Under the pieces are notes generated by a model, which saw only the letters and a list, made by a program, of their open reading frames with translations, searched no databases and was not told the origin of the DNA. Shown in pieces: positions 6,435 through 23,880 of a stretch of 64,000 nt of DNA. The stretch lies in IMG/VR virus record IMGVR_UViG_3300021959_006010, positions 211,367 to 275,366 of that record. One strand, given 5' to 3'. Numbering within the stretch: position 1 is the stretch's first letter; every line of letters begins with the position of its first letter. The translations under genes and the position numbers were made by a program.

Positions 6435-6651
6435 ACTTCTTTCCCTTGATTTTCTTACCACCTACTTTGACACGTTTTTTGCCCAGTTTGTGACTTTTGT
6501 TTCCGTCACGTCGACGATAGCCTTGCGATTTGCATGATGCGAGTGCGCTGGCACCCAGCGCCGAGTCCGGCTTTGATGATGTGCAAAGGCTGCGGCTAGC
6601 TTGCCAATCCTCTAGATCTTGTTCGCTTGTGAATACTTCTTCTACTCTCAT
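6406..6651 (-). CDS. hypothetical basic protein (possible internal head protein)
   Basis: TAAATA-N5-ATG; acidic N-terminus, Lys/Gly-rich C-terminus. Confidence 0.7.
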   Translation of the reverse strand: MRVEEVFTSEQDLEDWQASRSLCTSSKPDSALGASALASCKSQGYRRRDGNKSHKLGKKRVKVGGKKIKGKKYGGPLPDWS

Positions 6652-6665
6652 ACAGTTATTTAGTC

Positions 6666-6881
6666 TCAGCGATAGCGATCCGCAGGATTTTCCAACTGGT
6701 GATCATCATCCGAACTGAGACAGAATGTGAGTGCCTTTCTCGGACCCCTTGTGGTATTGATATTGATCTCCCCTGAACGCTCGTGAAATTCTATTTTGGT
6801 TATTTCTGCGGGCTCTCGATTCTTGCCTACAAGAATGGTTTGGCCTAGTTCTAGATTTAGGCTGATATTGCGTAATGTCAT
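6666..6881 (-). CDS. hypothetical protein
   Basis: 71 aa; AAGGAGA RBS. Confidence 0.65.
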   Translation of the reverse strand: MTLRNISLNLELGQTILVGKNREPAEITKIEFHERSGEININTTRGPRKALTFCLSSDDDHQLENPADRYR

Positions 6882-6939
6882 GGGAGTTCTCCTTGATCAG
6901 TTTTTGAAACGTGTACAAATATTTATACTAAGTATGAGT

Positions 6940-7251
6940 ATGAATATGAAAAGCGAACCCACTGTGGGCAAACTAGAAACAGTCAACAAATACACACCCG
7001 AAACCATCACCTCAGGGCAATCATACGCATGTCTCTACTCAACACGCATACAGTTAACTGAAGATGGTCGCATACCAGAACCAGGCGAAGCTGCACCAAG
7101 ATCAGAACCTCTAACTGGCTTTGCTGTGATACATCAGAGAGATTTAAACAATCGTCGTCTTACAGTAGTAGATGTTAACCTTGCTATTGAACTAGTGGTA
7201 GATTTTGATGATGTGTGGGACATTGACGAAGCTGTATTCCAAGACGCCTGA
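6940..7251 (+). CDS. hypothetical protein
   Basis: start re-assigned to the ATG 5 nt after TAAGTA (6929-6934). Confidence 0.6.
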   Translation: MNMKSEPTVGKLETVNKYTPETITSGQSYACLYSTRIQLTEDGRIPEPGEAAPRSEPLTGFAVIHQRDLNNRRLTVVDVNLAIELVVDFDDVWDIDEAVFQDA

Positions 7252-7300: not shown

Positions 7301-7507
7301 ATGAAACTACTACTACACAGAGAACTCACATGGCGAGAAGAATGCTTTGTACACGCTCTTACAGGCGGTGACTATGACATCACACCTAGAGTTACTCATG
7401 ACGAAATCTCACAGTACGAAATGCACATACCAAGTGATGCGCTTAATAGTAGAGACACTACACTACTGTTATTAGCACTAAGTGAATGTGTTACACGTGG
7501 CGAGTAG
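7301..7507 (+). CDS. hypothetical protein
   Basis: TAAATA-N5-ATG. Confidence 0.6.
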   Translation: MKLLLHRELTWREECFVHALTGGDYDITPRVTHDEISQYEMHIPSDALNSRDTTLLLLALSECVTRGE

Positions 7508-7823
7508 TAGAGGCCCCGCTGCTAATGCACGTATAAAGGAAGAAAGCTCAAACCAACCTGAGTCTTATAGTAGTAGTATAGCTATAGAGGCAGGTTGAAC
7601 ACTGTGTAGTAACCCGTTGATGTGTATAGAGAATATAGTAGAGAAATATGAAAAAGTATTTGAACTATGCCTCCATCGTCCTCAGCCAACGGTTTAGAAA
7701 TCCTATATAAATTCTTGAAAAAAGTGAAGAAAAACCATGAACTACCACAATAGGCCCCGCTGCTATGCGTGTGTAAGCGGTCTAAGACGCCATTTTACCA
7801 GGATGGGACTGATTCTGCCCAAA

Positions 7824-8032
7824 GATCAATGACTTATATAGAGAACCTCAACCAGCCCCGCAGGGGCCCCTACACTACTACTACGCATAGACTCTACTAC
7901 TACACTACTAACACTATAGATATCAATGACTTAGACTACTACACTACTATAGTAGTTCAACACTACACTATAAGTCATTGATATTACTACACTACTATAC
8001 ACTACACTACTACTATACAAATCAATCGCTTA
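7824..8032. promoter_or_regulatory. cluster of IHF-consensus sites in a low-complexity (ACT/ACTAC)n tract
   Basis: WATCAANNNNTTR matches at 7921, 7971 (minus), 8020 and a 1-mismatch copy at 7824. Confidence 0.55.
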
Positions 8033-8148
8033 GTGTAGGGTGTTCAAGTTCTGGCGTCTTTTGGTTTCTTTTAAAAAAATGGTTGACAGGTTGTGGTTTT
8101 GATCATATACTATAAAGACAGTTAGGGTAACACACAGAGGGAAATCAC

Positions 8149-8433
8149 ATGTTGAAATATCAGAATCTTGCACAGGTAGGCGACCGTATCAGAGCGTATG
8201 ACTTCCGCGGTGGTCGTGACTACTACATAGAAGGGGTCGTTACTGCCAAAGGTCGTATTGAAACTCCTCGAGGGGTGTTGATGTATACAGGCTACACCGT
8301 TGACATAGATGTGGACACAATGCCTGGTGCTGGCCGTGTGGGAGATGTTGGTTATGTGCCGTTTGAAACAAGCTTGGACTACGATGAGAGAATTGAACTG
8401 GTGGACACGGAGTTTGCATACTGGGGCAGCTGA
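8149..8433 (+). CDS. early hypothetical protein
   Basis: own promoter, GAGGGA leader. Confidence 0.8.
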   Translation: MLKYQNLAQVGDRIRAYDFRGGRDYYIEGVVTAKGRIETPRGVLMYTGYTVDIDVDTMPGAGRVGDVGYVPFETSLDYDERIELVDTEFAYWGS

Positions 8434-8530
8434 TGAAAAGAACACGCGAACACGAGAACAAAAAAACGGTTGACAGGCGTGTGTGTTGAGGCTATACTGT
8501 GTGTATAGTTAAAAACATAGAGGGCACACT

Positions 8531-8698
8531 ATGCAAACGAACACAAACGAATGGACAACACAGCAGAAGCGCAGGTTAGCGGATGCAGTATTTGAAGCAA
8601 TTGCACTAGCAGAAGCACTGCGTTTAGACTACAGGGTGGATGCTGTAGCAGAATTTGCAGAGGACTTGTATGCTGCTGTAGAAGAAGACGCAGTATAA
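8531..8698 (+). CDS. early hypothetical protein (55 aa, not in ORF track)
   Basis: promoter 8470, GAGGGC 8520, MQTNTNEW... Confidence 0.75.
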   Translation: MQTNTNEWTTQQKRRLADAVFEAIALAEALRLDYRVDAVAEFAEDLYAAVEEDAV

Positions 8699-8782
8699 AA
8701 AGTTTAAAAAAACACTTGACAGTGTGCGTGTACTGTGTTATAGTATACGCATACTAAACATTGCAACAAAAGTGAGGGCTTT

Positions 8783-9232
8783 ATGCAAACAATTAACTAC
8801 AGCACTACAGTAGCGGACTACTACGAGCACTTAACAAATGAGTGTGCGGATGAGACACGTTTTACTATGGATGAACAGTGCTTTGTGCTTGAGTTTTTAG
8901 CAGACACACTAAACGCACTTACACAGCTAAACAGTGAAACACTACGTGAGGAGGGCAACTTTGCACGTATGCAAGACTGTGCGGAAGTAGCGGACAACTA
9001 CGTAATGCTATTAAACAAGTGCAACAGTGAGTATGATGGCGAGGACTGCTATACGTTTACGCTAGAAGATGCGGGTGCTGCTATTTGCAGTTATGACACA
9101 GAGTACAGGGAGTGCATATGCGAGCAGTTTGAAGATGCGCTAAACGAGTACTTTGCACTTGTACAGCAAAACAAACTGCAAAAACTTGACATTGCAAACT
9201 GTTTAGCATGGCGTGTGTTTAACAGTTACTAG
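8783..9232 (+). CDS. early acidic hypothetical protein
   Basis: promoter 8716, GAGGGC 8774; no Pro. Confidence 0.8.
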   Translation: MQTINYSTTVADYYEHLTNECADETRFTMDEQCFVLEFLADTLNALTQLNSETLREEGNFARMQDCAEVADNYVMLLNKCNSEYDGEDCYTFTLEDAGAAICSYDTEYRECICEQFEDALNEYFALVQQNKLQKLDIANCLAWRVFNSY

Positions 9233-9306
9233 AAACAAAACACTTGACAAGTACTGTAGCACATGCTATAGTACTTGTACACATTAAATGCATTAGAGGG
9301 CAAACT

Positions 9307-9519
9307 ATGCAAGTACACATACTACAACTACAAGGCACTGGCGACGACGAGTACGCATGGGAAAACGCAAGCGTTTTTGCAAGCTGGGAAGAAGCACAGG
9401 AACGTGCTGCGCAAATGAGCAAAGAAGACATAGCGGAGTACGGCGAAGCGTTTTGGATAATGGGCGAGAACATGCGCATTGAAACGCACGACTTAGTAGA
9501 CAACAACTGGGGCTACTAA
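9307..9519 (+). CDS. early acidic hypothetical protein
   Basis: promoter 9244, GAGGGC 9296; start MQVH. Confidence 0.8.
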   Translation: MQVHILQLQGTGDDEYAWENASVFASWEEAQERAAQMSKEDIAEYGEAFWIMGENMRIETHDLVDNNWGY

Positions 9520-9643
9520 TACGCAGGCCCCGCTGCTATAAGGGCTGCTATACTACAGTATAGGCAAACTATACACAGTTGCACTTGCATTTTGGTGCAA
9601 CTGTGTTATATTGTTAGCATAACGCATATAGGAGGGCAAACAT

Positions 9644-9958
9644 ATGCAAGCAACTGTAATTAAAACACTAGACAGTGCAGTGCGTGTAACACTAGTAGAA
9701 GATGACGCGGAGTGGCGTGCAGAGTTTGAAGAATACGGATACGACACAGACATGTGGGCTGCATACGGAGACGGAGATGTGTGGCGAGACAACGTACAAG
9801 TTACGCATACACTAAACGATGAAGAGTACGGCTTTATTTGCGGCAATAGTAGTGACAGACGTGTGTACGGCTTTACAGTAGATGTACACAGAGCAGAAGA
9901 AGCAGATGGCAACTTTAGCTTTTGGGTAACAGAAGAACAATACGAACAAATAGGATAA
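9644..9958 (+). CDS. early acidic hypothetical protein
   Basis: GAGGGC 9632; no Pro. Confidence 0.8.
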   Translation: MQATVIKTLDSAVRVTLVEDDAEWRAEFEEYGYDTDMWAAYGDGDVWRDNVQVTHTLNDEEYGFICGNSSDRRVYGFTVDVHRAEEADGNFSFWVTEEQYEQIG

Positions 9959-10029
9959 AAAGAGGTTGACAACGTGTGTATGCTATGCTATAGTGTACAC
10001 ACACTAACACAGCATAGAGAGGGCTTTTT

Positions 10030-10299
10030 ATGCAAAACACAAATACAAAAACTGCACGTAGTATTGTACGCAACATCCTAAAGCAAAACAATGTTATGTA
10101 TTCCTCGCAAAGTTATACCGACAAATGTGCTAATCCTGCATTACGTAACTTGTGCTTCCTAACAAAAAACTTAACGCCTGCAGTTGTGCAACAAATTTCC
10201 TCTGCGCTTAACGTTACAAAAGTGCATGCAACAAAGCCTATGTTTTACAATGTGCATCCGGATGCACGTTATTTGCGCATAGTGCATTGCGCAAAATAA
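10030..10299 (+). CDS. early basic hypothetical protein
   Basis: promoter 9966, GAGGGC 10019; no Gly/Glu/Trp. Confidence 0.75.
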   Translation: MQNTNTKTARSIVRNILKQNNVMYSSQSYTDKCANPALRNLCFLTKNLTPAVVQQISSALNVTKVHATKPMFYNVHPDARYLRIVHCAK

Positions 10300-10307
10300 A
10301 ACTCAAT

Positions 10308-10349
10308 AAAAACAAGCACTTAGCAGAAAAATTATAAGTGCTTGTTTTT
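10308..10349 (+). terminator. inverted repeat / probable terminator
   Basis: AAAAACAAGCACTTA ... TAAGTGCTTGTTTTT. Confidence 0.55.
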
Positions 10350-10435
10350 AAACAAAACTTTTTGCTTTACAAATGCATAAACTTGTAGTATATTGTTTGT
10401 ATAAGTTAACAAGCATACATGCAGAGGAGCACATT

Positions 10436-10684
10436 ATGCAAAACACAAACTACGTATTTTTAAACGCACAAAACGCTGCAATTGTTGTAACAGTAAACAA
10501 TGTAGTTGTTGCTACAGACGTACAAACAGCAGACGCACTTGTACAAGTGTTTTTAACACACAACATTAATGTGCTTACAGACACTATTATGTGCAGCAGC
10601 AGCATAGATTTTGCTGAAGAGGAGGGCTTTGCTACAGACGCTTGTGCGCATAATATTATAGAGGACGCTTTAGCACAGTTGTAA
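10436..10684 (+). CDS. early hypothetical protein
   Basis: GAGGAG RBS; start MQNTNY. Confidence 0.8.
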   Translation: MQNTNYVFLNAQNAAIVVTVNNVVVATDVQTADALVQVFLTHNINVLTDTIMCSSSIDFAEEEGFATDACAHNIIEDALAQL

Positions 10685-10698
10685 TATACTAAAGTATT

Positions 10699-10732
10699 GC
10701 AAGCACTATACTACGTAGTGCTTGCTTTTTTT
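10699..10732 (+). terminator. rho-independent terminator
   Basis: GCAAGCACTA...TAGTGCTTGC followed by a T run. Confidence 0.7.
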
Positions 10733-10786
10733 GTAACTTGTGTTATATTGTTTGTATAACGTAACAGCAAATGCGAGGGCCGCAAC

Positions 10787-11137
10787 ATGCAAAACAACAT
10801 TAAGCGTAACAGCGTAGTAGTAGTAAACTATAAAAACACACAGCGTTTAGCACTTGTTAAAAGTGTACGTGCTAACAACATGCTAAACGTAACTATGTAT
10901 TTGTTTGCTAATGCAAGCATAGCTAGCGACTACTTAGTGCATGCAAGTACAGTAACGCTAACAAGTGTTAGTGCTAAACAGTTTACGCATTTAGCTAAAA
11001 GCTATCCCAACTATGCGTGTACTAGTGCTAACAGCAAACTATTGTTTAAGCTACAGCAACAAGCAGACGCAGCTTATCCGCAGTATGCAGCACTACGCAA
11101 CAACTATGCAAAGTATACTAGTGCGTTTGCTGCATAG
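10787..11137 (+). CDS. early hypothetical protein
   Basis: GAGGGC 10775; no Gly/Glu/Trp in 116 aa. Confidence 0.75.
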   Translation: MQNNIKRNSVVVVNYKNTQRLALVKSVRANNMLNVTMYLFANASIASDYLVHASTVTLTSVSAKQFTHLAKSYPNYACTSANSKLLFKLQQQADAAYPQYAALRNNYAKYTSAFAA

Positions 11138-11217
11138 TACGCTTAAAAAACACTTGACAACTGTGTGTATGTGTGCTACTATGTACACATACACTAAAGC
11201 ATAACGGAGGGCAGTTT

Positions 11218-11466
11218 ATGCAAAACACACAGTACGAAAACGCAGTTATTGCTGCAATTGAAAATTTTGCAAACAGCATTGCAAATTGTGCGCACGACAG
11301 CGTAGTAGAAAACAACGACTACGCAATTACAGACAGCATAGACAGCATTAACTTTTTGTTTAGCAACTACACAAAATACGACAGTGTACAAGCACTTGCA
11401 AACGCTGCACTAGACAGCACACTAGACACTGTAGTACGTGAAAGCATACATGCACAATTAACGTAA
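11218..11466 (+). CDS. early hypothetical protein
   Basis: promoter 11154, GAGGGC 11207; start MQNTQY. Confidence 0.8.
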   Translation: MQNTQYENAVIAAIENFANSIANCAHDSVVENNDYAITDSIDSINFLFSNYTKYDSVQALANAALDSTLDTVVRESIHAQLT

Positions 11467-11537
11467 AAAAGTAGTTGACAACTGCGTGTACATATGCTAT
11501 AGTGTATGTACACGTTAACAATGTAAGAGGGCATCTT

Positions 11538-11870
11538 ATGTATTACATTTACGAGAACAGCACAACCTACATTATTGGCAAGCCGGACCGCAATGGTGTA
11601 GCCCGTCCGGATCATCGCCAGTCGTATAAGACTATGGCCGCAGCGAAAGCAGCACTCACACGCATCTGCAAGGCAGAAGGCTTGTTGCCAACCGATCCCA
11701 ACTATGCACTGTATCGCTATTCGATTGCAGAGGCCAGCTACTTCCACAGCATGATTGAAAAGAAAGTACTGCGTAAAGTACTAGAAGGCTTTGGTGGCAA
11801 GGAGTATTACGAACCTGTTAACACTCCTGCCTATATGTCACCTGCAAGCGAAACCTACTGGAGCATGTAA
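11538..11870 (+). CDS. early hypothetical phage protein
   Basis: promoter 11475, GAGGGC 11527; C-terminal NTP.Y.SP.SE.YWSM. Confidence 0.8.
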   Translation: MYYIYENSTTYIIGKPDRNGVARPDHRQSYKTMAAAKAALTRICKAEGLLPTDPNYALYRYSIAEASYFHSMIEKKVLRKVLEGFGGKEYYEPVNTPAYMSPASETYWSM

Positions 11871-11998
11871 GATGGATCTACTCCAACGATACCCGAACGC
11901 ACTCGAGCAGCTAGAAATCCTCAAAAAAGATTATTTAGGGGTTGACAATTCTGTAGAGGAGTGCTATATTAGTAGTATAACAAATGGAGGGCAATCCA

Positions 11999-12163
11999 AT
12001 GCAAGTAGACCGCGAAAGACTGGAACGCATCGTCAAGATGGCAGAGAATCTCTACTCTGACGGTGAGTACCGCGATATGGTGTTCGATATACTGCGCACA
12101 GAACCTGAGCGTAGTGACAGCGACATTGCAAATGAATTAGCTATGCGTTGGTACGCTCCGTAA
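11999..12163 (+). CDS. early hypothetical protein (54 aa, not in ORF track)
   Basis: promoter 11942, GAGGGC 11987, MQVDRERLERIV... Confidence 0.75.
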   Translation: MQVDRERLERIVKMAENLYSDGEYRDMVFDILRTEPERSDSDIANELAMRWYAP

Positions 12164-12231
12164 AAAAGAGGTTGACACTGTAGCACTTCGGTGCTATAGT
12201 GTATGTATAAGTTAACAAAGAGGGCTACACA

Positions 12232-12444
12232 ATGACAGATTATTTGTACAACACTGCTTACAAGCTAGGCTGTTACCAAGCTATTGCAGATATGATGCGC
12301 CGCGAGATCCGCAACCTTGACGCTGCACAAGCAGCAGACGACGAGTTTATGGCTGACTGGGCTATGCGCAACCTGCGCTCGCTTGCTACACAGCTTGACG
12401 AAGCAGAAGAAAAAATGAAAAAAGAGGTTGACACTGTAGCATAG
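12232..12444 (+). CDS. early hypothetical protein
   Basis: promoter 12172, GAGGGC 12220. Confidence 0.8.
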   Translation: MTDYLYNTAYKLGCYQAIADMMRREIRNLDAAQAADDEFMADWAMRNLRSLATQLDEAEEKMKKEVDTVA

Positions 12445-12493
12445 TGGTGCTATAGTATATACATAACGTAACAAAAGCAAGAGGGCTTACAAA

Positions 12494-12937
12494 ATGGGTA
12501 CACGTTCAGCAATCGGTTACAAAACACCAGAAGGCAAAGTTCGCGCAAAATACAGCCACTACGATGGCTACCCTGCCTACACTGGCAAGATGCTGCAAGA
12601 GCACTACCAGGAGGCACGTAAGATTGCACAGATGGTAGAGCTAGGCGACCAGTCGTTTATCGCTCCAAACGTATTTCCAACAGACAAGTCGCACAGTTTT
12701 AACACGCCGCAAGAAGATGTGATTGTGTTTTACGGACGCGACAGAGGCGAGTCTAATGTAGACGCAAAAGACTTTGACACTGTGCAGGAGTTTGTAGACT
12801 ACTACGAAGGCGCAGGCTGCGAGTACTTCTACTTGCACACAGCAAACGGTTGGATCGTACACGACCGCTATGGCGTAGGCAACGATGCTAACGGCTATCC
12901 TGTGTTTGACATGCTAGAAAATAAATTGCCTGCATAG
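12494..12937 (+). CDS. conserved-looking phage early protein
   Basis: MGTRSAIG...YSHYDGYP...G..L motif; GAGGGC 12481. Confidence 0.85.
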   Translation: MGTRSAIGYKTPEGKVRAKYSHYDGYPAYTGKMLQEHYQEARKIAQMVELGDQSFIAPNVFPTDKSHSFNTPQEDVIVFYGRDRGESNVDAKDFDTVQEFVDYYEGAGCEYFYLHTANGWIVHDRYGVGNDANGYPVFDMLENKLPA

Positions 12938-13005
12938 GAAAAAAGATGTTGACAGTATGCGCTTTTGAGTGCATACTGTTTATATAAGTTAGCAAAGAGG
13001 GAACA

Positions 13006-13179
13006 ATGAACGAACTGCTAGAAATGATTGAGGACTTGGAAACAATCCAAACACTCACTATGCACCCGGCGCTAGACGAGACTGTTGAGCGCATCCTTGC
13101 AAAATACGAAGAGCGCCGCGAAGCATGGGAAGCAGAGCTTGAGCGCCAATACGAAATGTTCAAAGAGGAACTTGTATAA
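13006..13179 (+). CDS. early acidic hypothetical protein (57 aa, not in ORF track)
   Basis: promoter 12949, GAGGGA leader. Confidence 0.7.
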   Translation: MNELLEMIEDLETIQTLTMHPALDETVERILAKYEERREAWEAELERQYEMFKEELV

Positions 13180-13186
13180 ATGAATA

Positions 13187-13263
13187 GGGCCTTTAGCTCA
13201 ATCGGTTAGAGCACCGGACTCATAATCCGTAGGTTGCGAGTTCGAGTCTCGCAGGGCCCACCA
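13187..13263 (+). tRNA. tRNA with CAT anticodon, probably tRNA-Ile2 (lysidine type)
   Basis: GGGCCT acceptor stem, CT-CAT-AA loop, TTCGAG T-loop, encoded CCA; body resembles bacterial Ile2 tRNAs more than Met. Confidence 0.85.
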
Positions 13264-13268
13264 AGTAA

Positions 13269-13345
13269 CTGCCCTTAGCTCAGCTGGATAGAGCAACAGC
13301 CTTCTAAGCTGTGGGTCGTAGGTTCGAATCCTACAGGGCAGGCCA
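13269..13345 (+). tRNA. tRNA-Arg(TCT)
   Basis: CTGCCCT/AGGGCAG acceptor, ACAGC-CTTCTAA-GCTGT anticodon arm, CCA. Confidence 0.95.
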
Positions 13346-13349
13346 ATTA

Positions 13350-13433
13350 GCCCGCGTGGTGGAATAGGTAGACACAAGGGACTTAAAATCCCTCGCTTAT
13401 GGCGTGCCAGTTCGAGTCTGGCCGCGGGCACCA
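13350..13433 (+). tRNA. tRNA-Leu(TAA)
   Basis: GCCCGCG/CGCGGGC acceptor, AGGGA-CTTAAAA-TCCCT, long variable arm, CCA. Confidence 0.95.
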
Positions 13434-13452
13434 AACAAAGAGGAACAGGACA

Positions 13453-13608
13453 ATGATGTGTCCAGAATGTAACATGTCGAAACCTTGGACAAGCTCACGC
13501 TGTCCTAACTGCAACCAGAGTGTTGGCATTGTGTTCGGACTATGGTGGAACACACTTCGAGTGGTACTGACTCTTGCACTGTTCGTTTTTATTGTAAGTT
13601 TATTTTAA
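13453..13608 (+). CDS. small zinc-ribbon membrane protein
   Basis: CPEC...CPNC followed by a hydrophobic C-terminal helix. Confidence 0.65.
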   Translation: MMCPECNMSKPWTSSRCPNCNQSVGIVFGLWWNTLRVVLTLALFVFIVSLF

Positions 13609-13680
13609 AAAAGTGGTTGACAAAGGCAACAAAGGCTGTATACTGTACACAGTTAGATAGAAAACACAGAGGGCAACTAG

Positions 13681-14679
13681 ATGAATATCACTATCGTAGA
13701 AGGCACATATAAAATTCGAGGCAACGACACTTCAGTAGCAGGTCAAACGTTTCCTCTAGTAGAAGAGTTTAGAATGGGTAAGAATGGCGGGTACGTAACT
13801 GTTGATGGATCAGCAGTAGCAGGCTTCCCGGATCGTAATATCAAGATCAAGGTTGTAAGCGCCGACAGTTACGTACCCGCGGGGGAAGGCCCCGCTGATA
13901 GACAGCGCGAAGAAAGCGATGAAGAGATCATCGAACGAATTCGCACTCGCTTTGACATGCTAAAAGAAATGACCAAGGCTGTCAAGAAGCAAGATGTCAA
14001 AGCAATGATCGTAAGTGGCCCTCCAGGTGTTGGTAAGAGCCACGGCGTAGAAGAAGTACTTGATCGCTATAACACTATGCAGATGTTAGGCGGAGGCAAG
14101 CAGTTCGAAGTTATCAAAGGTGCTATGTCGCCCATTGGTTTGTACTGCAAGCTTTTCAAGATGGCAGACAAAGGTAAGGTTGTAGTGTTTGACGACTGTG
14201 ACTCGATCTTCCAGGACGAGCTAAGCCTTAACATCCTAAAGGCTGCTCTGGATTCAAAGAAAGATCGTTGGATCCACTGGAACACTGATTCGTTCAAGTT
14301 GCGCAACGAAGGTGTGCCAGACAAGTTCAAGTTCGAAGCAAGTGCGATCTTTATCACGAACCTAAAGTTTGACAAAGTCAAAGGTAAGATGCGTGAGCAC
14401 TTGGAAGCACTAGAGTCACGCTGTCACTACATGGACCTTACCATTGACACAGAACGAGACAAGATGCTCAGAATCAAGCAGGTCATTCGTGACGGTATGC
14501 TAGATAGCTATAAGCTGAGTGATGAGATCAAAGAAGAGATTGTAGACTTCTGCGATATTAATAAGAAGCGACTACGTGAATTGTCCCTAAGAACAGTTTT
14601 GAAAGTCGCCGATTTGGCACTTGCCTTTCCAGATCGTTGGGAAGCATTTGCCGAAAATACCGTGATGCGTCGAGCCTAG
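13681..14679 (+). CDS. P-loop (AAA+-like) ATPase
   Basis: Walker A GPPGVGKS, Walker B VVVFDDCD, sensor IFITN, Arg finger ALESR. Confidence 0.85.
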   Translation: MNITIVEGTYKIRGNDTSVAGQTFPLVEEFRMGKNGGYVTVDGSAVAGFPDRNIKIKVVSADSYVPAGEGPADRQREESDEEIIERIRTRFDMLKEMTKAVKKQDVKAMIVSGPPGVGKSHGVEEVLDRYNTMQMLGGGKQFEVIKGAMSPIGLYCKLFKMADKGKVVVFDDCDSIFQDELSLNILKAALDSKKDRWIHWNTDSFKLRNEGVPDKFKFEASAIFITNLKFDKVKGKMREHLEALESRCHYMDLTIDTERDKMLRIKQVIRDGMLDSYKLSDEIKEEIVDFCDINKKRLRELSLRTVLKVADLALAFPDRWEAFAENTVMRRA

Positions 14680-14697
14680 CTCCGCTGATTGGTAGAC

Positions 14698-14846
14698 ACT
14701 GTGAGCGGGTCCGCCCTCAACTTGCTCACAGTACATTGTGGTTGGACCGCCCTCATCCAACTACAGTAGAGTAGACGAACGCCCTCACGCTCTACTCTAA
14801 TAGTGCCCTCGCAGTGTATGCCCTCACACTGCGGGGGCTTTTTTTT
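14698..14846 (+). ncRNA. four-hairpin RNA presenting GCCCUC loops; the last hairpin is also a terminator
   Basis: stems 14698-14732, 14737-14765, 14767-14799, 14805-14838; loops CCGCCCTCA, CCGCCCTCA, AACGCCCTCA, ATGCCCTC; G-U pairs on + strand; T8 tail. Confidence 0.8.
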
Positions 14847-14923
14847 GAAAAAAATGGTTGACAAGCTATAGGTTCGGTGTTATATTATTAGTATAAGTTG
14901 AAACACTGTAAGAGGGCAAACAG

Positions 14924-15118
14924 ATGATTAAGGTACACAACAGAGGTTACGGAACTGGCGAAGCACGTTACATTCCGTTGAGCGAAGTAAACATCCACAC
15001 ACAAAAGATCTGTGAGTTTACAGGCGCTCCGTACATTATCTTCGAGCACAAAGACTATCCGTTGGGTTCTTTGAGTGCTACATTTGATGGCACCTACTGG
15101 GACTGTGATTTAGACTAA
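14924..15118 (+). CDS. early hypothetical protein
   Basis: promoter 14858, GAGGGC 14912. Confidence 0.75.
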   Translation: MIKVHNRGYGTGEARYIPLSEVNIHTQKICEFTGAPYIIFEHKDYPLGSLSATFDGTYWDCDLD

Positions 15119-15129
15119 GGGAGAATACG

Positions 15130-15300
15130 ATGTACGAAGATGAGAACGAAGATTTGATCATTGCTGTACTGGAGCAGATCCGCGAGGATGTCAGCAACGG
15201 AGACCTCACAGCAATCGAACAGTTGATTGAAATGCAGGCACCTTACGCACTGCTGAACTTCCTACCTGAAGAGAAACAGAAACAATTTATGGAAGATTAG
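15130..15300 (+). CDS. early acidic hypothetical protein (56 aa, not in ORF track)
   Basis: AAGGGAGA RBS, MYEDENEDLIIAVLEQI... Confidence 0.7.
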   Translation: MYEDENEDLIIAVLEQIREDVSNGDLTAIEQLIEMQAPYALLNFLPEEKQKQFMED

Positions 15301-15444
15301 GAGACTATTTTCCGGATGCGTCCGTGTAGAGGACCCGGCCGGCTAAAAGCACCATTGTTAGTTTCAGTCAAGCTAGAGCGGCAACGTCAATAAGGCCGTG
15401 CGGTGCGATTGGAGATACTAGGGGCGTATTCGGAAAATAGTTTC
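15301..15444 (+). ncRNA. structured ncRNA of unknown class
   Basis: 23-bp closing stem 15301-15323/15422-15444 with four G-U pairs; internal hairpins, GCAA tetraloop, possible pseudoknot. Confidence 0.7.
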
Positions 15445-15519
15445 AAATTAGGGGTTGACAAATCCCACAGTAGATCATATACTGTATATAACAGTTAGGA
15501 AATAGCAAGAGGGCAAATC

Positions 15520-15828
15520 ATGCAATTCGTAATTACTACACAGTTCCTGGAAAACTACGGCGCACACTGCGAGGACGGTAAGTTCAAGTCCGGCAATGCA
15601 TATTGGAAGATGAAGGGAGGCACAGACTACTGTGTGTCAGGTCTTGATCGCATCCAAGATGCGGTTGCGTTCGTGGCAGCCAAGGAGATGCATAATAGCA
15701 TCGGCGCTAAGGAGTTTCCAGTAGAGTGGAAGACCTATGCAGAGTGGGAGCGTGATCTTCCGGAAGACGAGGACTACAGAGAGTTCTTGCTCGAGCAACT
15801 GAAACACGTAGACCCGAGGGAGGTGTAA
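15520..15828 (+). CDS. early hypothetical phage protein
   Basis: promoter 15455, GAGGGC 15509; TQ..ENYGAH...YWK.KGG motif. Confidence 0.8.
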   Translation: MQFVITTQFLENYGAHCEDGKFKSGNAYWKMKGGTDYCVSGLDRIQDAVAFVAAKEMHNSIGAKEFPVEWKTYAEWERDLPEDEDYREFLLEQLKHVDPREV

Positions 15829-15829
15829 T

Positions 15830-15991
15830 ATGTTTCGTCAATATTTCGTATACTACGATGGTCGGTTCCAAGGAACTGTAATGGCACTTTCAGAACAGAG
15901 TGCGCTGGACAAAGGTTGCCAGATGGTAGGTGTGAGTGCTAGTGCCTACTCGGGTCGAGCACGCCGTTTGGTAGAAGTAATTCGCAAATAG
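15830..15991 (+). CDS. hypothetical protein (53 aa, not in ORF track)
   Basis: GGAGGT RBS. Confidence 0.65.
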   Translation: MFRQYFVYYDGRFQGTVMALSEQSALDKGCQMVGVSASAYSGRARRLVEVIRK

Positions 15992-16056
15992 AGGTTGACA
16001 AACCGTCAATCCTTTGTTATAGTGTATGTATAAGTTAAACAAACGAGGGCAAAGAT

Positions 16057-16284
16057 ATGTTTAATGCACGAGACGAAGCACTAGAATTGGTAGAGAACGG
16101 CGTAGTGTCAGCAGAGTATTTGCTAACAGCCTGCCTCAAGTATATGTCAACAGACGATGTTGCAGACATGCTAGATGCTAACGAACTTTCCGATCGCTTC
16201 CTAGAAGATGACGAGCCAGACGTAGACGAGGCTCAGGAGTGGGAAGACTTTGGCGAAGTTGGTTACGAACCGGAGTATATCTAA
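16057..16284 (+). CDS. early acidic hypothetical protein
   Basis: promoter 15995, GAGGGC 16045. Confidence 0.8.
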   Translation: MFNARDEALELVENGVVSAEYLLTACLKYMSTDDVADMLDANELSDRFLEDDEPDVDEAQEWEDFGEVGYEPEYI

Positions 16285-16445
16285 TGGCAGGAGCAGACAA
16301 CACTCGTCGCATTTACATCACAGTCGCGCTGGAGATACTGCGTGACGCAAACGAACAGGAAGTAATCGCAGAGTGCGATTACACCTTTGAACATCCCGAC
16401 ATTGTCGATACGGAAATTATGGGAGAGGACGAATACTATGCCTAA
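16284..16445 (+). CDS. hypothetical protein
   Basis: TAATG coupling to upstream ORF. Confidence 0.6.
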   Translation: MAGADNTRRIYITVALEILRDANEQEVIAECDYTFEHPDIVDTEIMGEDEYYA

Positions 16446-16989
16446 TTGGTGCAATAACTCATTTTCAATCACCGGCTCTACTGAGTCAATCAAAGAACTG
16501 TGGGACACAGCACAGACTGCCGACAACGGTGAATTCGGCTTGCTCAATGCTATTATGCCAATGCCCAAAGAGCTAGAAGGCACAACGGCTCCTAGCGAAG
16601 GTGGCGACAACTGGTATAACTGGCGAGTAGAGAACTGGGGCACCAAGTGGGAGGTCTCAGACGAAGGACTCGAGTATACGGATCACGGAGATGGCACTGC
16701 ATCAATCGATGGTTGGTTTGACAGTGCATGGGCTCCACCCATTGGTGTGTATGAGCAATTGGCTGCCGACTTTGACTCGTGTGTGATCGAGTGCTCTTAC
16801 TACGAGCCCGGCATGGACTTCGGAGGCTTTTGGTCAAGTGAGAAAGGAGACATCTACTTTGAAAGCCTAGACGATATGCTAAAAGAAGATCCGGACACTT
16901 GGAGCGACGAGTTCCGAGAATTTGAAGCAGAGTATGATCTGCTGTCAGAAGAGTGGCGCTTCGAAGACGAAGAAGTAGAATTAGATTAA
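16438..16989 (+). CDS. DUF1281/YubB-like protein
   Basis: MPNWCNN, WY.WRVENWGTKW, FDSAWAPP, YYEPGMDFGG. Confidence 0.75.
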   Translation: MPNWCNNSFSITGSTESIKELWDTAQTADNGEFGLLNAIMPMPKELEGTTAPSEGGDNWYNWRVENWGTKWEVSDEGLEYTDHGDGTASIDGWFDSAWAPPIGVYEQLAADFDSCVIECSYYEPGMDFGGFWSSEKGDIYFESLDDMLKEDPDTWSDEFREFEAEYDLLSEEWRFEDEEVELD

Positions 16990-17052
16990 AAAAAGAGGTT
17001 GACACAGTGAGCCATTGGTGCTATAGTATAGATAACAGTTAGGAGGGCACCT

Positions 17053-17313
17053 ATGGCTTACTGGACACACACCGTCAAACCAATTGGTTGTTTCGTAGAG
17101 AAAGAGGTAGGCAACTACTTCGAGTATAGCGTCAACGACGATCCACTCACAGGCTTCAACGAAGACTTCCCACACAAGATTTGGGTAGGAGACGGCTACC
17201 GTTATGGAAATGTCAAGAAGACGGTTGCTGTGATCTGTGTAGACGAAGACGAATACGGCTTGCCTGTAGTAGAGAAGTGGTTCTTGAAAAAGAATACAGC
17301 TTATGCAAATTAG
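17053..17313 (+). CDS. early hypothetical protein
   Basis: promoter 16999, GAGGGC 17043. Confidence 0.8.
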   Translation: MAYWTHTVKPIGCFVEKEVGNYFEYSVNDDPLTGFNEDFPHKIWVGDGYRYGNVKKTVAVICVDEDEYGLPVVEKWFLKKNTAYAN

Positions 17314-17379
17314 GGGTTGACAAAACACTAGACTGAGTGCATACTGTATATATAGTTAGAAATTAGGAGGGCTCCTACA

Positions 17380-17595
17380 ATGGCAACAGAATTAAAAAGC
17401 ACAACAGAAGATGTTAGCTTGACACGCTTTTGGGGCGGCGAAGCTCGCGGCACTTGTGTACAGGTTACAACAACCTACACAGCAGATCCAAAAGACTTCT
17501 TTAAGCATATAAGTTTGACACGCGAAGAGGCTGCAAGTGTAGCAGCCGACTTGATGAAGTTTGCACAAGGCACAGAAGAGGAGCACTGGGCATGA
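17380..17595 (+). CDS. early hypothetical protein
   Basis: promoter 17317, GAGGGC 17367. Confidence 0.8.
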   Translation: MATELKSTTEDVSLTRFWGGEARGTCVQVTTTYTADPKDFFKHISLTREEAASVAADLMKFAQGTEEEHWA

Positions 17596-17798
17596 TTAAG
17601 TCACTATTGGTTGGATTGTTTGTAGGCGGCGCATTGTTTGTTCTTGCAGACTATGCGCTTTCGATTCCAGACGTAAAGATGAGCTATGCTACAAACACCT
17701 GCGTAGAAGTTATCAATTATCCTAGTACGCTGTTTGGCACTACCAACTTCAGCTGTGAGTTGATGCCAACAAAATTTAATCACATTTGGGTAAAATAG
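17592..17798 (+). CDS. small membrane-anchored hypothetical protein
   Basis: ATGA coupling; hydrophobic N-terminus. Confidence 0.7.
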   Translation: MIKSLLVGLFVGGALFVLADYALSIPDVKMSYATNTCVEVINYPSTLFGTTNFSCELMPTKFNHIWVK

Positions 17799-17862
17799 GG
17801 GTTGACAAAACCCCTAGCTGGTGGTATACTGTATATAACAGTTAGGAAACGAGGGTTAGAAA

Positions 17863-18213
17863 ATGAAAAAATTCGCAATCAACACAGCAAGCAATCTAAT
17901 GTCAGCAGCCGTAATTGGCGGCGTATTGTTGTTCGCGGCGGCACCAGCACACGCTTGGGGCGAACGTGAGCAAGGCATTCTTACTGGAGTGATTGGCACA
18001 CTGATCATCCAAGACATCAATCGTGGCAACAACGGTCACACCACACACGGTCATCAGCATCCGCAACAGCCTGTAGTCATCCAGCACACCACTCGCAACT
18101 GCGGCGTTGAAGTTCGCACAGTATACACAGACGGTGGCACACGTTCGATTACCGATACTGTTGATGCGTGTACTGGTCGATTGATTCAACGTGTAGAACG
18201 CAAGAGCTGGTAA
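17863..18213 (+). CDS. early secreted/membrane hypothetical protein
   Basis: signal-like AAAPAHA; promoter 17802, GAGGGT leader. Confidence 0.75.
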   Translation: MKKFAINTASNLMSAAVIGGVLLFAAAPAHAWGEREQGILTGVIGTLIIQDINRGNNGHTTHGHQHPQQPVVIQHTTRNCGVEVRTVYTDGGTRSITDTVDACTGRLIQRVERKSW

Positions 18214-18333
18214 TATGTATATAGTCGAAGACAACGACGGTCGTACGATTGCAATATGCAGTCGGCTAGAAGATGCTCGTGCATACACGGCAACCAACCT
18301 TGATAATGTAACCTATACCATAAAGGAAAACAC

Positions 18334-18603
18334 ATGCAATTCTTCGAAGCAACAGAACAGCAACGAAAGCTCGCAGACATCGGCCGACAAATGATGGACT
18401 GGAGCGAGAACTACGGTCGCACCCAAGGCCTACGAGACGTAACGGACAACGGCCTGCGAACACTGAACGAAATGAGTCACGTGGGCAACATGCTCACTCA
18501 CTACGGTGCTCCTTATGGAACTAGTTCCAAAGACTTCTCAGAAGCAGACCGCAAATTAATTGCTCAGTTCCTACAGAAAGAGGTTGACATCGAGCGCAAG
18601 TGA
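18334..18603 (+). CDS. hypothetical protein
   Basis: AAGGA RBS. Confidence 0.7.
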   Translation: MQFFEATEQQRKLADIGRQMMDWSENYGRTQGLRDVTDNGLRTLNEMSHVGNMLTHYGAPYGTSSKDFSEADRKLIAQFLQKEVDIERK

Positions 18604-18645
18604 TGGTATACTGTATATAACAGTTAAGCAATAGAGGGCAAAACT

Positions 18646-18921
18646 ATGCGTAAACTACAGCAATTCGTCGACGATCAGAACGTGTGGAGATCACTCTTCA
18701 ACACTGCAGAGATCACTTTCCCACTAAGCCAAGCACATGTAAACGACTTAGGCAAGAGCATTGACTCAAAGCTTTCGCCAGAAAACCTACATCAAGACGG
18801 AGAGCGCGACTACAAAGAAGCGATCCGCATTGGCAACTACCTTAACGATGTACTGGACGAGCTGAATGCATACTGCAAACAGAACAGTCTAGTAGAACCA
18901 ACTGTATGGGAGGCATGGTAA
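18646..18921 (+). CDS. early hypothetical protein
   Basis: promoter 18584, GAGGGC 18634; LSPENLH.DGE motif. Confidence 0.8.
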   Translation: MRKLQQFVDDQNVWRSLFNTAEITFPLSQAHVNDLGKSIDSKLSPENLHQDGERDYKEAIRIGNYLNDVLDELNAYCKQNSLVEPTVWEAW

Positions 18922-19166
18922 TGAACCTAGCACAAACATTCTTCCAGGCTGTTAACAAACCTGAGAACTGGTACAAAGAAGACGGCATGAGCCGCATCAA
19001 TTGGAACTTCGTAGACGCTGACTGCTACATGGCATGCGGCAGAGAGTATCCAACAACAGATGCATTCTACGACGAGTGGAACGCATTGTGCGACATCTAT
19101 GTTGCAAGCTATAACAGCCACAGTCTACAAATGAACCAAATACTGGTTGACACAGTACCGGCTTGA
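18921..19166 (+). CDS. hypothetical protein
   Basis: TAATG coupling, GGAGG RBS; INWNFVDAD motif. Confidence 0.7.
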   Translation: MNLAQTFFQAVNKPENWYKEDGMSRINWNFVDADCYMACGREYPTTDAFYDEWNALCDIYVASYNSHSLQMNQILVDTVPA

Positions 19167-19211
19167 AGCTATACTGTAAGAGTAAGTTAAACAAAGCAAG
19201 AGGGCATTGCA

Positions 19212-19556
19212 ATGAACTACACTGTAAACGAAATCCAAAACATCCTAGCAGAAGCAACTGAAGCAGCCTACACTGCCGCGGACGCATTTGAACAGGAATA
19301 CTTTCCGGACAACGGCTGGGGAGCATGTGGCTTTGCTTGGGTAGACATATTCGGCATTAAAGGCAACACCAAGCTGGGCCGTGCGCTTAAGGCAGCAGGC
19401 ATTACTAAGAGCTACAACGGCGCACACCAAATATGGAACCCGTCAAAGTATCCTACACAGAATGTAGACACACTAGAAGCAGGTGCACGAGCGGCAGCAG
19501 ATGTGTTCCGCAAGTATGGCTTTGACAAAACATACGCAGGCAGTCGACTAGACTAA
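19212..19556 (+). CDS. early hypothetical phage protein
   Basis: promoter 19147, GAGGGC 19200; CGFAWV...SRLD. Confidence 0.8.
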   Translation: MNYTVNEIQNILAEATEAAYTAADAFEQEYFPDNGWGACGFAWVDIFGIKGNTKLGRALKAAGITKSYNGAHQIWNPSKYPTQNVDTLEAGARAAADVFRKYGFDKTYAGSRLD

Positions 19557-19580
19557 TACGATCAAACAGTAGAGAGACTA

Positions 19581-19613
19581 GGGGCAAGTTCTAACGCTTG
19601 CCTTTTTTCTTTT
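19581..19613 (+). terminator. terminator ending the early island
   Basis: GGCAAG...CTTGCC plus T run. Confidence 0.7.
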
Positions 19614-19614
19614 C

Positions 19615-20440
19615 AAAATAAAAAAATAAAAAAATTTTTTCTCGAGGGGGGCCGGGGCTTATATAAAAAGTCTTGTAAAAACAAGCACTTAGCTTAATGA
19701 GCAGTTTTAAAAATGGTGTGATGCAAAATCACCACCTCACTTCTATAAGTACTCCACCACAATTTTTTGCGCAGCAGATTTTTTTACCCTGTAGACCCAT
19801 TTCGGACAATGTATATAAAAGCCTCTACACAATAAGCGTATACTCGCGCAACACAATAAGCGTAGGGAGCTCTTGTGTAACAAAGCGAGCTCTGCGTAAC
19901 ACACACGTGAGTGCAAGAGTCGCTTCCTGAAAGGAAAGACTCTCCAACGAGCGTGTTAGTTGTCGCTTTGCGAAGCAAAAGACGACTTTGAGTTTGCTCA
20001 TATATAGCGTGTACTACAGAACCTCTACAGTGTGCGCTATACAGTGATAAGTAATATGGACATTATGTACGAAATAAAACTTATATATACTCCTGAGCCA
20101 TACTCGCTAACTCTAAAAGAGTCAATCACATACTGTGCTACAGTAGAGTTATTCTTGCGCGGCATACACACATCACAGTGCAGTGCCAGTAGAATAGCTT
20201 TTGAGTCAGATAGAGATCGCATGCTAGGTTTGCTTATACTATCAGAGAGTACAAGCTTTACTCCTGTAATTATATAGGTGTCTGTGCGCTAATATAAGCG
20301 TCATACAGCAGGTTTAGGATTGTTTGGCATCGTGTGCAACTAAACGCTGATTTTCTTGCGCAAAAGCGTTTACCGCTTCGCGGCTTGTAGGTTTACCGCA
20401 GCGGCTTCGCCGTTTTTTGGGCTTAAACGCTTCGCGCTTG
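19615..20440. other. structured, mostly non-coding box (A-tracts, direct repeats, GAA-triloop hairpins); possible origin or injection/packaging signal
   Basis: A/T tract 19615-19640; ACACAATAAGCGTA x2 (19827, 19851); GCGAAGC on + at 19970 and on - at 20375, 20404, 20429. Confidence 0.45.
20056..20277 (+). CDS. hypothetical protein
   Basis: TAAGTA box immediately upstream. Confidence 0.5.
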   Translation: MDIMYEIKLIYTPEPYSLTLKESITYCATVELFLRGIHTSQCSASRIAFESDRDRMLGLLILSESTSFTPVII

Positions 20441-20441
20441 T

Positions 20442-20879
20442 TTAGAACTTGTACTCGAAGTTTTGGCAGGTCTTGCCCTTGCGTAGCAACTGTGCTCCGT
20501 TGCGTGTGTGGAAACGTTCTGCCATTTCTGTTAGGGGACTCAGTGTGCAGTAGCGTTGTATGTGTGGATGATCACGCTGTATAACTTCTGCTGTAGAGAA
20601 TATGATGTCTCGTCCTGCGCCTCGCGCATAACTCCATACTGTATAGAACATTGCAGTGTCGGGCCGGGTGTTGTGCGCAAGTTCTTCTTCAGTTAGTGCC
20701 GTGCCCTGTGTATATGCTACACACAGTACAGCAGCTACCACACCGTCCCATTCCAGCGCATATACTTCTCTGCCGTCTCGAAGTCTCCATTCTAGATCAA
20801 TGTGTGGACGAACAGGATCGTCCAGTATATAACTCTTTTTCCAATCTCTAGTGTCAAACTGTACCAGTTGCGTTTCCAT
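20442..20879 (-). CDS. hypothetical protein, possibly GNAT-like fold
   Basis: FYTVWSY..GAGR...TLSP.T..A.RFH..NGA resembles acetyl-CoA-binding motifs. Confidence 0.6.
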   Translation of the reverse strand: METQLVQFDTRDWKKSYILDDPVRPHIDLEWRLRDGREVYALEWDGVVAAVLCVAYTQGTALTEEELAHNTRPDTAMFYTVWSYARGAGRDIIFSTAEVIQRDHPHIQRYCTLSPLTEMAERFHTRNGAQLLRKGKTCQNFEYKF

Positions 20880-22410: not shown

Positions 22411-23880
22411 CTACTTGTTTGCAGCAGCCGTCCAAACCTTAACTCCATATTGTTTTTCAAATGCTTGTGCATCTTCTACAGTGTTAACAATGGGTTTACC
22501 CTTGATGTTAAGTGAGGTATTTAGTAGCACAGGACAGCCTGTAGCTTCGTACCAACGTTCTAGCAGTTTTCTAAAGCCCACGCTTTGCGTTGAAGAAACT
22601 GTCTGTACCCGAGAGGTGCCGTCCCTGTGCGTGATTGCAGGTAGTCCAGGATCCTTGCAAGTTGCAGTGTATTGCATGTAGGGGTTTGCATATCCGTCGA
22701 AATAGGTAGACGCATGTTCCTCCAATACTGCTGGCGCAAAAGGTCTAAACTTCTGTCGTTGTTTGATTTCGTTAACTCTATCTTTAATGTCTGGCCTTCT
22801 GGGGTCTGCAAGGAGGGAGCGGTGTCCAAAAGCTCTGGGCCCGAACTCTGCCCTGCCGTTGGCCACGCCAACAATACCAGTAGTAAGCAACTCGTTAAGT
22901 ACTTCTTCAACAGGATAATCTCCTTCTATGTTATAACCTGTGTACACATGATCCATTTCCATGTGTTGTTTTTTATGGGCTAGTACACAACCTATTGCAC
23001 TGCCTGCATCACCCGGGTTAGGCATGATCCATACGTTATCGAAAAACTTGTATGCTAAATGGTTAGCACTGCAATTTAACGCACATCCTCCCATTAACAC
23101 AAGGTTTTTGCTAGGCGCCATTATGCGGGCTACATTCAAAATACCTTGAAAAATCTTTTCATACAGGTTCTGGGCTGCTGCCGCTATGTCAAAATAGTCT
23201 TGTTCAGTGGTCAAATCCTTGCGCCAGTCTAAGCACCCTCTATGTAAATTGCGTTTAAAAGTAATAGGGTGTCCATAAGGGTCAACAAAATCTTCAACCA
23301 TAGCTTGGTACAAACGATCTGGGTCACCGTATGCAGCCATACCCATAAGAATGTATTCGTCTTCTTGAGGTTTTAATCCAACCCTTTGCGTGATTGCCGA
23401 GTACCATAGTCCCACGGAATGTGGATATTTTTGGGAATAGACCTTTTTGAGTCTTCCTTCTTTACCATGCCAGATAGTAAGTGTATCAAACTCTCCAATG
23501 CTGTCGATACTAATAACGCAGGCTTCTGTAAAAGGACTAGTATAATAACCGGCAGCAGCATGGGAAAGATGATGATCAGTATACCTAATAGGAGCATGTA
23601 TCCCATAAGATCCAAGATACTTACGAATATTGTTTTCACCCAACCGTATTCCTTGCCCTGCTCTAAATTGTCTAACAGTTTTGACAAGGGGTCTTTCATA
23701 CCAAATAATTTCATCTGGTTCTCCCCATTTCCTTGCATATTCAATTAACTCGTTATTTAAGTCGGGGTCGTTTTTTATACCGCTAAAACGTTCGCTATGA
23801 CTCGCAAACTCTAGTCCGTCTTCTGAAAAAACAGCTAGAGCAGCATCATGACTGTTAGCACTTATACCCCATGTAATCAT
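22411..23880 (-). CDS. carbamoyltransferase (NodU/CmcH family)
   Basis: SHDAA, ERFS..KND, HHLSHAAAGYY, MGMAAYG, GGCALNC.AN, GDAGSAIG, EFGPRAFG.RSLLADP, FRPFAP, LLNTSLN. Confidence 0.92.
   Translation of the reverse strand: MITWGISANSHDAALAVFSEDGLEFASHSERFSGIKNDPDLNNELIEYARKWGEPDEIIWYERPLVKTVRQFRAGQGIRLGENNIRKYLGSYGIHAPIRYTDHHLSHAAAGYYTSPFTEACVISIDSIGEFDTLTIWHGKEGRLKKVYSQKYPHSVGLWYSAITQRVGLKPQEDEYILMGMAAYGDPDRLYQAMVEDFVDPYGHPITFKRNLHRGCLDWRKDLTTEQDYFDIAAAAQNLYEKIFQGILNVARIMAPSKNLVLMGGCALNCSANHLAYKFFDNVWIMPNPGDAGSAIGCVLAHKKQHMEMDHVYTGYNIEGDYPVEEVLNELLTTGIVGVANGRAEFGPRAFGHRSLLADPRRPDIKDRVNEIKQRQKFRPFAPAVLEEHASTYFDGYANPYMQYTATCKDPGLPAITHRDGTSRVQTVSSTQSVGFRKLLERWYEATGCPVLLNTSLNIKGKPIVNTVEDAQAFEKQYGVKVWTAAANK

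Follow-up and report, generated by a model that had tools for sequence, protein, structure and literature searches.

The DNA analysed here (the window) is a 64,000-nt stretch that forms the last 64 kb of a 275-kb IMG/VR contig, IMGVR_UViG_3300021959_006010, from an uncultivated jumbo phage. It encodes a 1093-aa tail sheath, a T4-type large terminase and helicases, and also a NodU/CmcH-type carbamoyltransferase (22411-23880, minus strand) and a class I/II aminotransferase (2880-4079, + strand), which are candidate auxiliary or modification enzymes. The closest cultured relatives are the Pseudomonas jumbo phage PA5oct group, and these are distant (terminase 54%, ATPase 49% identity); PA5oct depends on the host RNA polymerase (PMC7318152). 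Between 8.0 and 19.3 kb the + strand carries about 22 near-consensus sigma-70-type promoters (8083-19175; TTGACA-N17-TATAGT or TATACT, often with an extended -10 TG), most of them in front of a small ORF of unknown function, but only three good terminators. G+C is higher here (0.44-0.47) than in the structural and replication region (0.32-0.42). These are the characteristics of a typical early, host-takeover region. A 13-bp hairpin at 9573-9606 overlaps the -35 to -10 spacer of one of these promoters, in front of the leader motif at 9632.

Within this region lies a gene for a NrdC.10-like AAA ATPase (13681-14679, + strand; 332 aa, phrog_1250), which is preceded by a promoter at 13617-13644 (TTGACA-N16-TATACT), the nearest promoter that would transcribe the sequences described below. 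The hexamer GAGGGC is found at 13669-13674, 6 nt before the ATPase ATG at 13681. A cluster of three tRNA genes, Met(CAT), Arg(TCT) and Leu(TAA), lies just upstream of the ATPase unit at 13187-13433, and the same tRNAs sit upstream of the ATPase in loci of the second clade described below, so that this synteny of tRNA genes, ATPase and hairpins is old. Immediately beyond the ATPase 3'UTR is the next early promoter (14858-14886; TTGACA-N17-TATATT), followed by the GAGGGC leader (14912-14917) of the next early gene, with its ATG at 14924.

Predicted structure of the ATPase 3'UTR

The ATPase 3'UTR begins at 14680-14697, with CUCCGC at 14680-14685. Folding of the segment from 14680 to 14850 (+) with RNAfold predicted four consecutive hairpins. 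H1 (14698-14732) has 13 bp, including 2 G-U pairs, and the loop CCGCCCUCA at 14711-14719, with GCCCUC at 14713-14718. H2 (14735-14767) has 12 bp in the minimum free energy (MFE) structure, where the initial annotation had given 10 bp at 14737-14765, and the same loop CCGCCCUCA at 14747-14755, with GCCCUC at 14749-14754. H3 (14768-14798) has 10 bp plus one bulge and the loop AACGCCCUCA at 14778-14787, with GCCCUC at 14781-14786. H4 (14805-14838) has 13 bp, 9 of them G-C, and the loop AUGCCCUC at 14818-14825, and it is followed directly by U8 (14839-14846), as expected of an intrinsic terminator. It is the top-listed terminator-like site, with the most G-C pairs, in the segment from 7500 to 20500. 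Loops of 8-10 nt are oversized for plain terminators; the other two good terminators of the early region have loops of 5-6 nt. The MFE of the array is -70.6 kcal/mol, compared with -46.6 +/- 4.2 for shuffled sequences (z -5.7, 0 of 200 as good).

GCCCTC occurs 6 times on the + strand of the window, and 5 of these copies lie within 113 nt, at 14713-14825 for the loops and 14805-14810 for the remaining copy; about 9.6 are expected for both strands together. By our own Poisson estimate from the shuffle mean, such a cluster is expected about once in 10^9 windows. The four loop copies have a predicted P(unpaired) of 0.90-0.99, whereas the fifth copy (14805-14810) is fully paired in the H4 stem, as the initial annotation stated. 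These observations confirm the initial description of four hairpins with near-identical loops complementary to an early-leader motif. However, its argument that the G-U pairs identify the + strand is weak. The minus strand also folds well (-66.1 kcal/mol, z -3.6), and across relatives the + strand is the more stable in only 11 of 16 and 17 of 29 cases, so that folding energies do not decide the strand. We assign the element to the + strand on the basis of gene orientation, the + strand promoters and the U-tract.

The early leader motif

GAGGGC occurs 21 times on the + strand between 8520 and 19205. We observed that 19 of these copies lie 3-7 nt before an ATG and about 10-29 nt after a TTGACA-N17-TATAGT-type promoter; the motifs start at 8520, 8774, 9296, 9632, 10019, 10775, 11207, 11527, 11987, 12220, 12481, 13669, 14912, 15509, 16045, 17043, 17367, 18634 and 19200. 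Four further promoter-driven early leaders carry variants: GAGGGA at 8137-8142 (ATG at 8149), GAGGAGC at 10424-10430 (ATG at 10436), GAGGGA at 12997-13002 (ATG at 13006) and GAGGGT at 17851-17856 (ATG at 17863). In contrast, none of 38 other long ORFs in the window has the motif at its RBS; genes outside the early block use AGGAG, GGAGG, or nothing recognizable.

The hexamer is invariant in the 19 leaders while their flanks vary, and it lies 5.5 +/- 1.0 nt from the ATG but 21.5 +/- 4.4 nt from the -10 hexamer, so that it is a feature of the ribosome site and not of the promoter. GAGG is an ordinary Shine-Dalgarno core, but the trailing GC would face A and C in the canonical 16S tail, and its invariance therefore needs another reader. 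The leaders are predicted to be largely unstructured (mean P(unpaired) 0.70), and duplexes between loops and leaders are predicted at -13 to -17.5 kcal/mol, against a mean of -6.2 for 33 non-early RBS regions. By our own estimate, these duplexes are also stronger than a four-base GAGG:CCUC contact with 16S rRNA.

Conservation in related loci

Megablast and blastn searches of 50,697 phage records detected no relative of this region, nor of the corresponding elements of the second and third clades described below, and the PA5oct group lacks both motifs. We therefore used the ATPase protein as an anchor and retrieved 85 loci from IMG/VR (denoted here by L numbers). All 16 loci whose ATPase is at least 65% identical have both a GAGGGC-rich + strand and 1-5 copies of GCCCUC within 260 nt after the ATPase stop, whereas none of the loci at 63% or below has either feature. 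Across the 16 loci, 41 of the 59 + strand copies fall in predicted hairpin loops, in 15 of the 16 loci. The hairpins number two to five and their stems are unrelated in sequence, yet most of the loops keep GCCCUC, very often as uguGCCCUCg in the terminator hairpin, and an extra unpaired copy often directly follows the stop codon. The GCCCUCACGCU core of H3 recurs in L123-L126, L242 and L249. The fifth GCCCUC of the window, in the H4 stem, is not conserved in relatives.

On a gap-free alignment of 11 such terminal hairpins, 85% of cells are paired, against 55% in shuffles; 11 of 13 pairs have changes on both sides, 0 of 500 shuffles reach the observed value, and sliding the partner by one to three columns collapses the signal. 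So the stems exist to present the loop. A low-GC sister group of this first clade lacks the array in the DNA retrieved and has instead 2-3 tandem AGGCAA copies in the ATPase leader, which no explanation considered here covers, and a search of the retrieved DNA for a complementary loop found none. AAGGCA(A) repeats accompany the ATPase promoter or leader in many lineages (the leaders of L243, L244, L246 and L250, and of L274, L278, L286, L297 and L305), and in the window two copies lie in the spacer of the ATPase promoter.

Co-variation of loop and leader motifs

A second clade (27 loci, ATPase 52-63% identical) uses the leader AGGAGCGAA and displays UUCGCUCC in a conserved hairpin loop. Its leaders read A-GGAGCG-A-A, 3-7 nt before the ATG (157 distinct leaders), and match the loop UUCGCUCC over 8 nt. 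The hairpin, with the loop AUUCGCUCC, is followed by a terminator and the next promoter, and lies either directly after the ATPase (L254, L307, L314) or after two or three small genes of the same unit; in most of these loci a conserved ORF of about 90 aa (9567-9839 in L253) lies immediately upstream of it. RNAalifold applied to a gap-free alignment of these elements was uninformative, because the outer stems carry indels and the inner stem never varies. A third clade (10 loci, 49-52% identical) has three hairpins after the ATPase, whose loops contain UUCUCACU, ACUCCU and UCUCACUC, and the ATPase leader and a few others read AGGAGUGAGAA. Thus, in both of these clades the leader and loop motifs have changed and remain complementary (GGAGCGAA/UUCGCUCC and AGUGAGAA/UUCUCACU, respectively), which is the comparative test that the initial annotation had proposed.

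In counts, the first clade has GAGGGC before an ATG in 104 of 389 ORFs and 41 GCCCUC copies in predicted hairpin loops; the second has GGAGCG in 131 of 676 ORFs and 21 CGCUCC loops; and the third has GUGAGA in 13 of 206 ORFs and 11 UCUCAC loops. Wrong combinations number 0-2 for leaders and 0-7 for loops, and 32 other loci have none. An unbiased scan for hairpin loops complementary to the commonest leader hexamers of each locus recovered the same elements. Within a locus, the ATPase leader matches the loops of its own 3'UTR over 6.3 nt (first clade) or 8.0 nt (third clade), against about 3 nt for mismatched locus pairs. On the ATPase tree the motif states need 5 changes, against 40.5 when shuffled; the first and second clades share a well-supported clade and the third is distant. 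It should be noted that only two or three independent motif switches support the co-variation, and that the top of the second-clade hairpin is invariant and so is uninformative.

Two further lineages give suggestive extra pairs. In L306 (7920-9050) and L312 (1332-2470), a sister lineage of the third clade, AAUGAGAAC is found near the 5' end of the ATPase leader, not at the SD, and the leader sequence AAUGAGA is matched by UCUCAUU in a terminator loop after the ATPase; compared with GUGAGA/UCUCAC of the third clade, this looks like a one-base compensatory change. In L325-L327 (ATPase at 6001-6987 and the following 50 nt), another distant lineage, the ATPase leader carries UAAGGAAU, UAAGGAAU and UAAGGAGCC, with AGGAAU and AGGAGC, and the first 3'UTR hairpin has a 20-nt loop, AUUCCUCCUAGCUCCUAAAG, containing AUUCCU and GCUCCU, the complements of two of these.

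Discussion

In the aggregate, these observations support the core of the initial interpretation, that of an RNA whose hairpin loops are presented to pair with the RBS motif of early leaders. The explanation that we favor, with a probability of about 0.6 and resting entirely on sequence comparison of metagenomic contigs, is that the roughly 167-nt stretch after the ATPase stop is a structured, multivalent anti-leader RNA, made by host sigma-70 RNA polymerase as the 3' end of the early ATPase transcript and terminated by its own last hairpin. Its four apical loops each expose GCCCUC (UGCCCUC in H4), complementary to the GAGGGC(A) of about 19 early mRNAs, including the ATPase mRNA itself. While pairing is supported by comparison, transcription and release of the RNA, action in trans, repression and its timing are inferred. 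Loop-leader pairing would cover the Shine-Dalgarno core, compete with the 16S anti-SD and so lower initiation on early mRNAs, probably also speeding their decay. Because the array is made from early promoters and is likely more stable than the AU-rich mRNAs, it would act as delayed negative feedback or early shut-off, much as the proteins RegA and RegB do in T4. Yet, pairing is only 6-7 nt per loop, and H1-H3 have C, not U, to the 5' side of GCCCUC, so that they cannot extend the pairing to the common A that follows GAGGGC. Also, one locus with 4 sites faces about 20 strongly promoted targets, so that stoichiometric repression needs accumulation or catalytic turnover.

The most substantial alternative, although we consider it unlikely, is that pairing occurs only in cis, with the loops folding back on the leader of the same ATPase (operon) transcript to autoregulate that gene, as in icaR (PMC3868564), and with the motif on other early leaders kept for another reason. 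The array is always at the 3' end of the ATPase transcription unit and the ATPase leader always carries the motif, and in the third clade, L306/L312 and L325-L327, the complementary motif is found mainly in the ATPase gene's own leader, which fits a cis role at least as well; possibly, this is the ancestral mode. However, a purely cis interaction does not explain an invariant hexamer with variable flanks on 19 leaders here, or on 104 and 131 leaders in the first and second clades, nor why one mRNA with a single site needs 2-5 loops. The two modes are not exclusive.

It is doubtful that pairing has the opposite sign, such that the loops shield early leaders from a nuclease that targets the SD region (RegB-like or host), or otherwise stabilize or activate them. 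The same complementarity evidence applies, and T4 RegB targets an SD plus extension and is blocked by secondary structure (PMC3014915). However, pairing over GAGG should also block 30S binding, the leaders, predicted to be mostly open, offer no inhibitory fold to open, and Pfam and PHROGs scans of ten early ORFs recognized no RegB-like protein and gave no RNA chaperone or nuclease. We regard as similarly improbable a protein sponge or operator array whose complementarity to the leaders is incidental. A repeated motif in the loops of unrelated stems is the architecture of protein sponges, and the top of the second-clade hairpin is invariant over about 17 nt, more than pairing needs, but loop and leader change together in three clades and stay complementary, which a protein reading one strand's sequence would not explain, and the loops contain no GGA. 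Ordinary tandem terminator and stabilizer hairpins, alike through local duplication or chance, are disfavored: H4 is a bona fide terminator-like site and 3' hairpins do protect mRNAs, but the loops are oversized, they are conserved across 16 loci on unrelated stems with compensatory changes, and they co-vary with the leaders. Least likely is a DNA-level element, for although GAGGGC/GCCCTC is the same site on duplex DNA and folding energies do not discriminate the strands, the leader motif is used in only one orientation and is spaced relative to the ATG, and the array copies are embedded in hairpins with compensatory changes, which duplex recognition does not need.

Comparisons with known systems indicate a new RNA family, with precedents for its putative mode of action. 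Rfam gave only three tRNAs in the window at the gathering threshold, and in a 501-nt search a sub-threshold resemblance to NsiR1 (RF02399) at 14769-14846 (26.5 bits, E 0.0038, against a gathering score of 39 bits), which is generic to two hairpins plus a terminator. The second-clade element is not a tRNA and matches no Rfam family. We found no description of such an element in the literature searched; reviews and transcriptome papers list c4, 3'UTR-derived ncRNAs of unknown function and prophage sRNAs (PMC12197685, PMC10914365, PMC7318152).

Functionally, the element is nearest to the c4 antisense RNA of phages P1 and P7, whose loops pair around an RBS and whose loop and target specificity appears to differ between related phages, giving heteroimmunity (PMC12197685; Citron and Schuster 1990), and to staphylococcal RNAs with C-rich loops. 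But c4 lies upstream of its target, is cut out of the precursor, controls one operon (icd/ant) of a temperate phage and uses two different loop sequences, whereas here 2-5 loops with one motif lie in a 3'UTR of a lytic-type jumbo phage with about 20 potential targets, and Rfam C4 was not among the hits at E up to 10 in 14500-15000. RNAIII and RsaE-type sRNAs of Staphylococcus and Bacillus, the former noted in the initial annotation, likewise seem to use several hairpin loops with the same C-rich motif to pair with the SD of multiple mRNAs, although these are probably independent bacterial genes with a UCCC motif that reads generic G-rich SDs, without a private extension. In the icaR mRNA of Staphylococcus aureus, a C-rich anti-SD motif in the 3'UTR pairs with the Shine-Dalgarno region and represses translation (PMC3868564), but it is a single motif acting on its own mRNA; here the motif is multivalent and shared with many other leaders, and its specificity lies in an SD extension. 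In regulatory logic the proposed RNA is nearest to T4 RegB and RegA, early-encoded factors that recognize the initiation region of early mRNAs, for RegB GGAG plus a 3' extension (PMC3014915), and shut them down; these are proteins, with no sequence relation to the element. CsrB/RsmZ-type sponges have a similar row of hairpins with a repeated loop motif, but their loops carry GGA and titrate CsrA/RsmA, while here the loop motif is the complement, not a copy, of the mRNA motif, and there was no Rfam match. The PAK_P3 ncRNA1/2 are abundant small RNAs processed from the 3'UTR of a phage gene (PMC10914365), but no anti-leader loops are described for them and the phages are unrelated.

Known mechanisms for shutting off phage early genes after transcription rely on proteins such as T4 RegA and RegB, and known phage antisense RNAs control single genes, mostly in temperate phages. 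Here, a widespread group of uncultivated jumbo phages (at least 53 contigs in three clades) appears to mark its early mRNAs with a clade-specific extension of the Shine-Dalgarno sequence and to encode in a 3'UTR a multivalent RNA that reads that mark. If confirmed, this would be the first RNA regulator of a whole early regulon in a virulent-type phage, a clear case of regulator-target co-evolution, and a natural set of mutually orthogonal leader/anti-leader pairs useful for synthetic translational control.

More speculatively, the SD extension and its matching loops could form a private, co-evolving address code, whereby an infecting phage floods the cell with an anti-leader RNA that first times its own early genes and then silences those of any superinfecting phage using the same code. 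Escape from such RNA-level superinfection exclusion would drive the motif switches seen between clades, a heteroimmunity like that of P1/P7 c4 but acting on a whole early regulon of lytic jumbo phages. This remains an unlikely possibility on present evidence. With regard to the switches themselves, some first-clade 3'UTRs still begin with CUCCGC (the window, L124-L126) or CGCUCC (L241 and L244, just after the ATPase stop), which resembles the second-clade anti-leader motif although first-clade leaders do not use GGAGCG, and which may be a relic of a motif switch.
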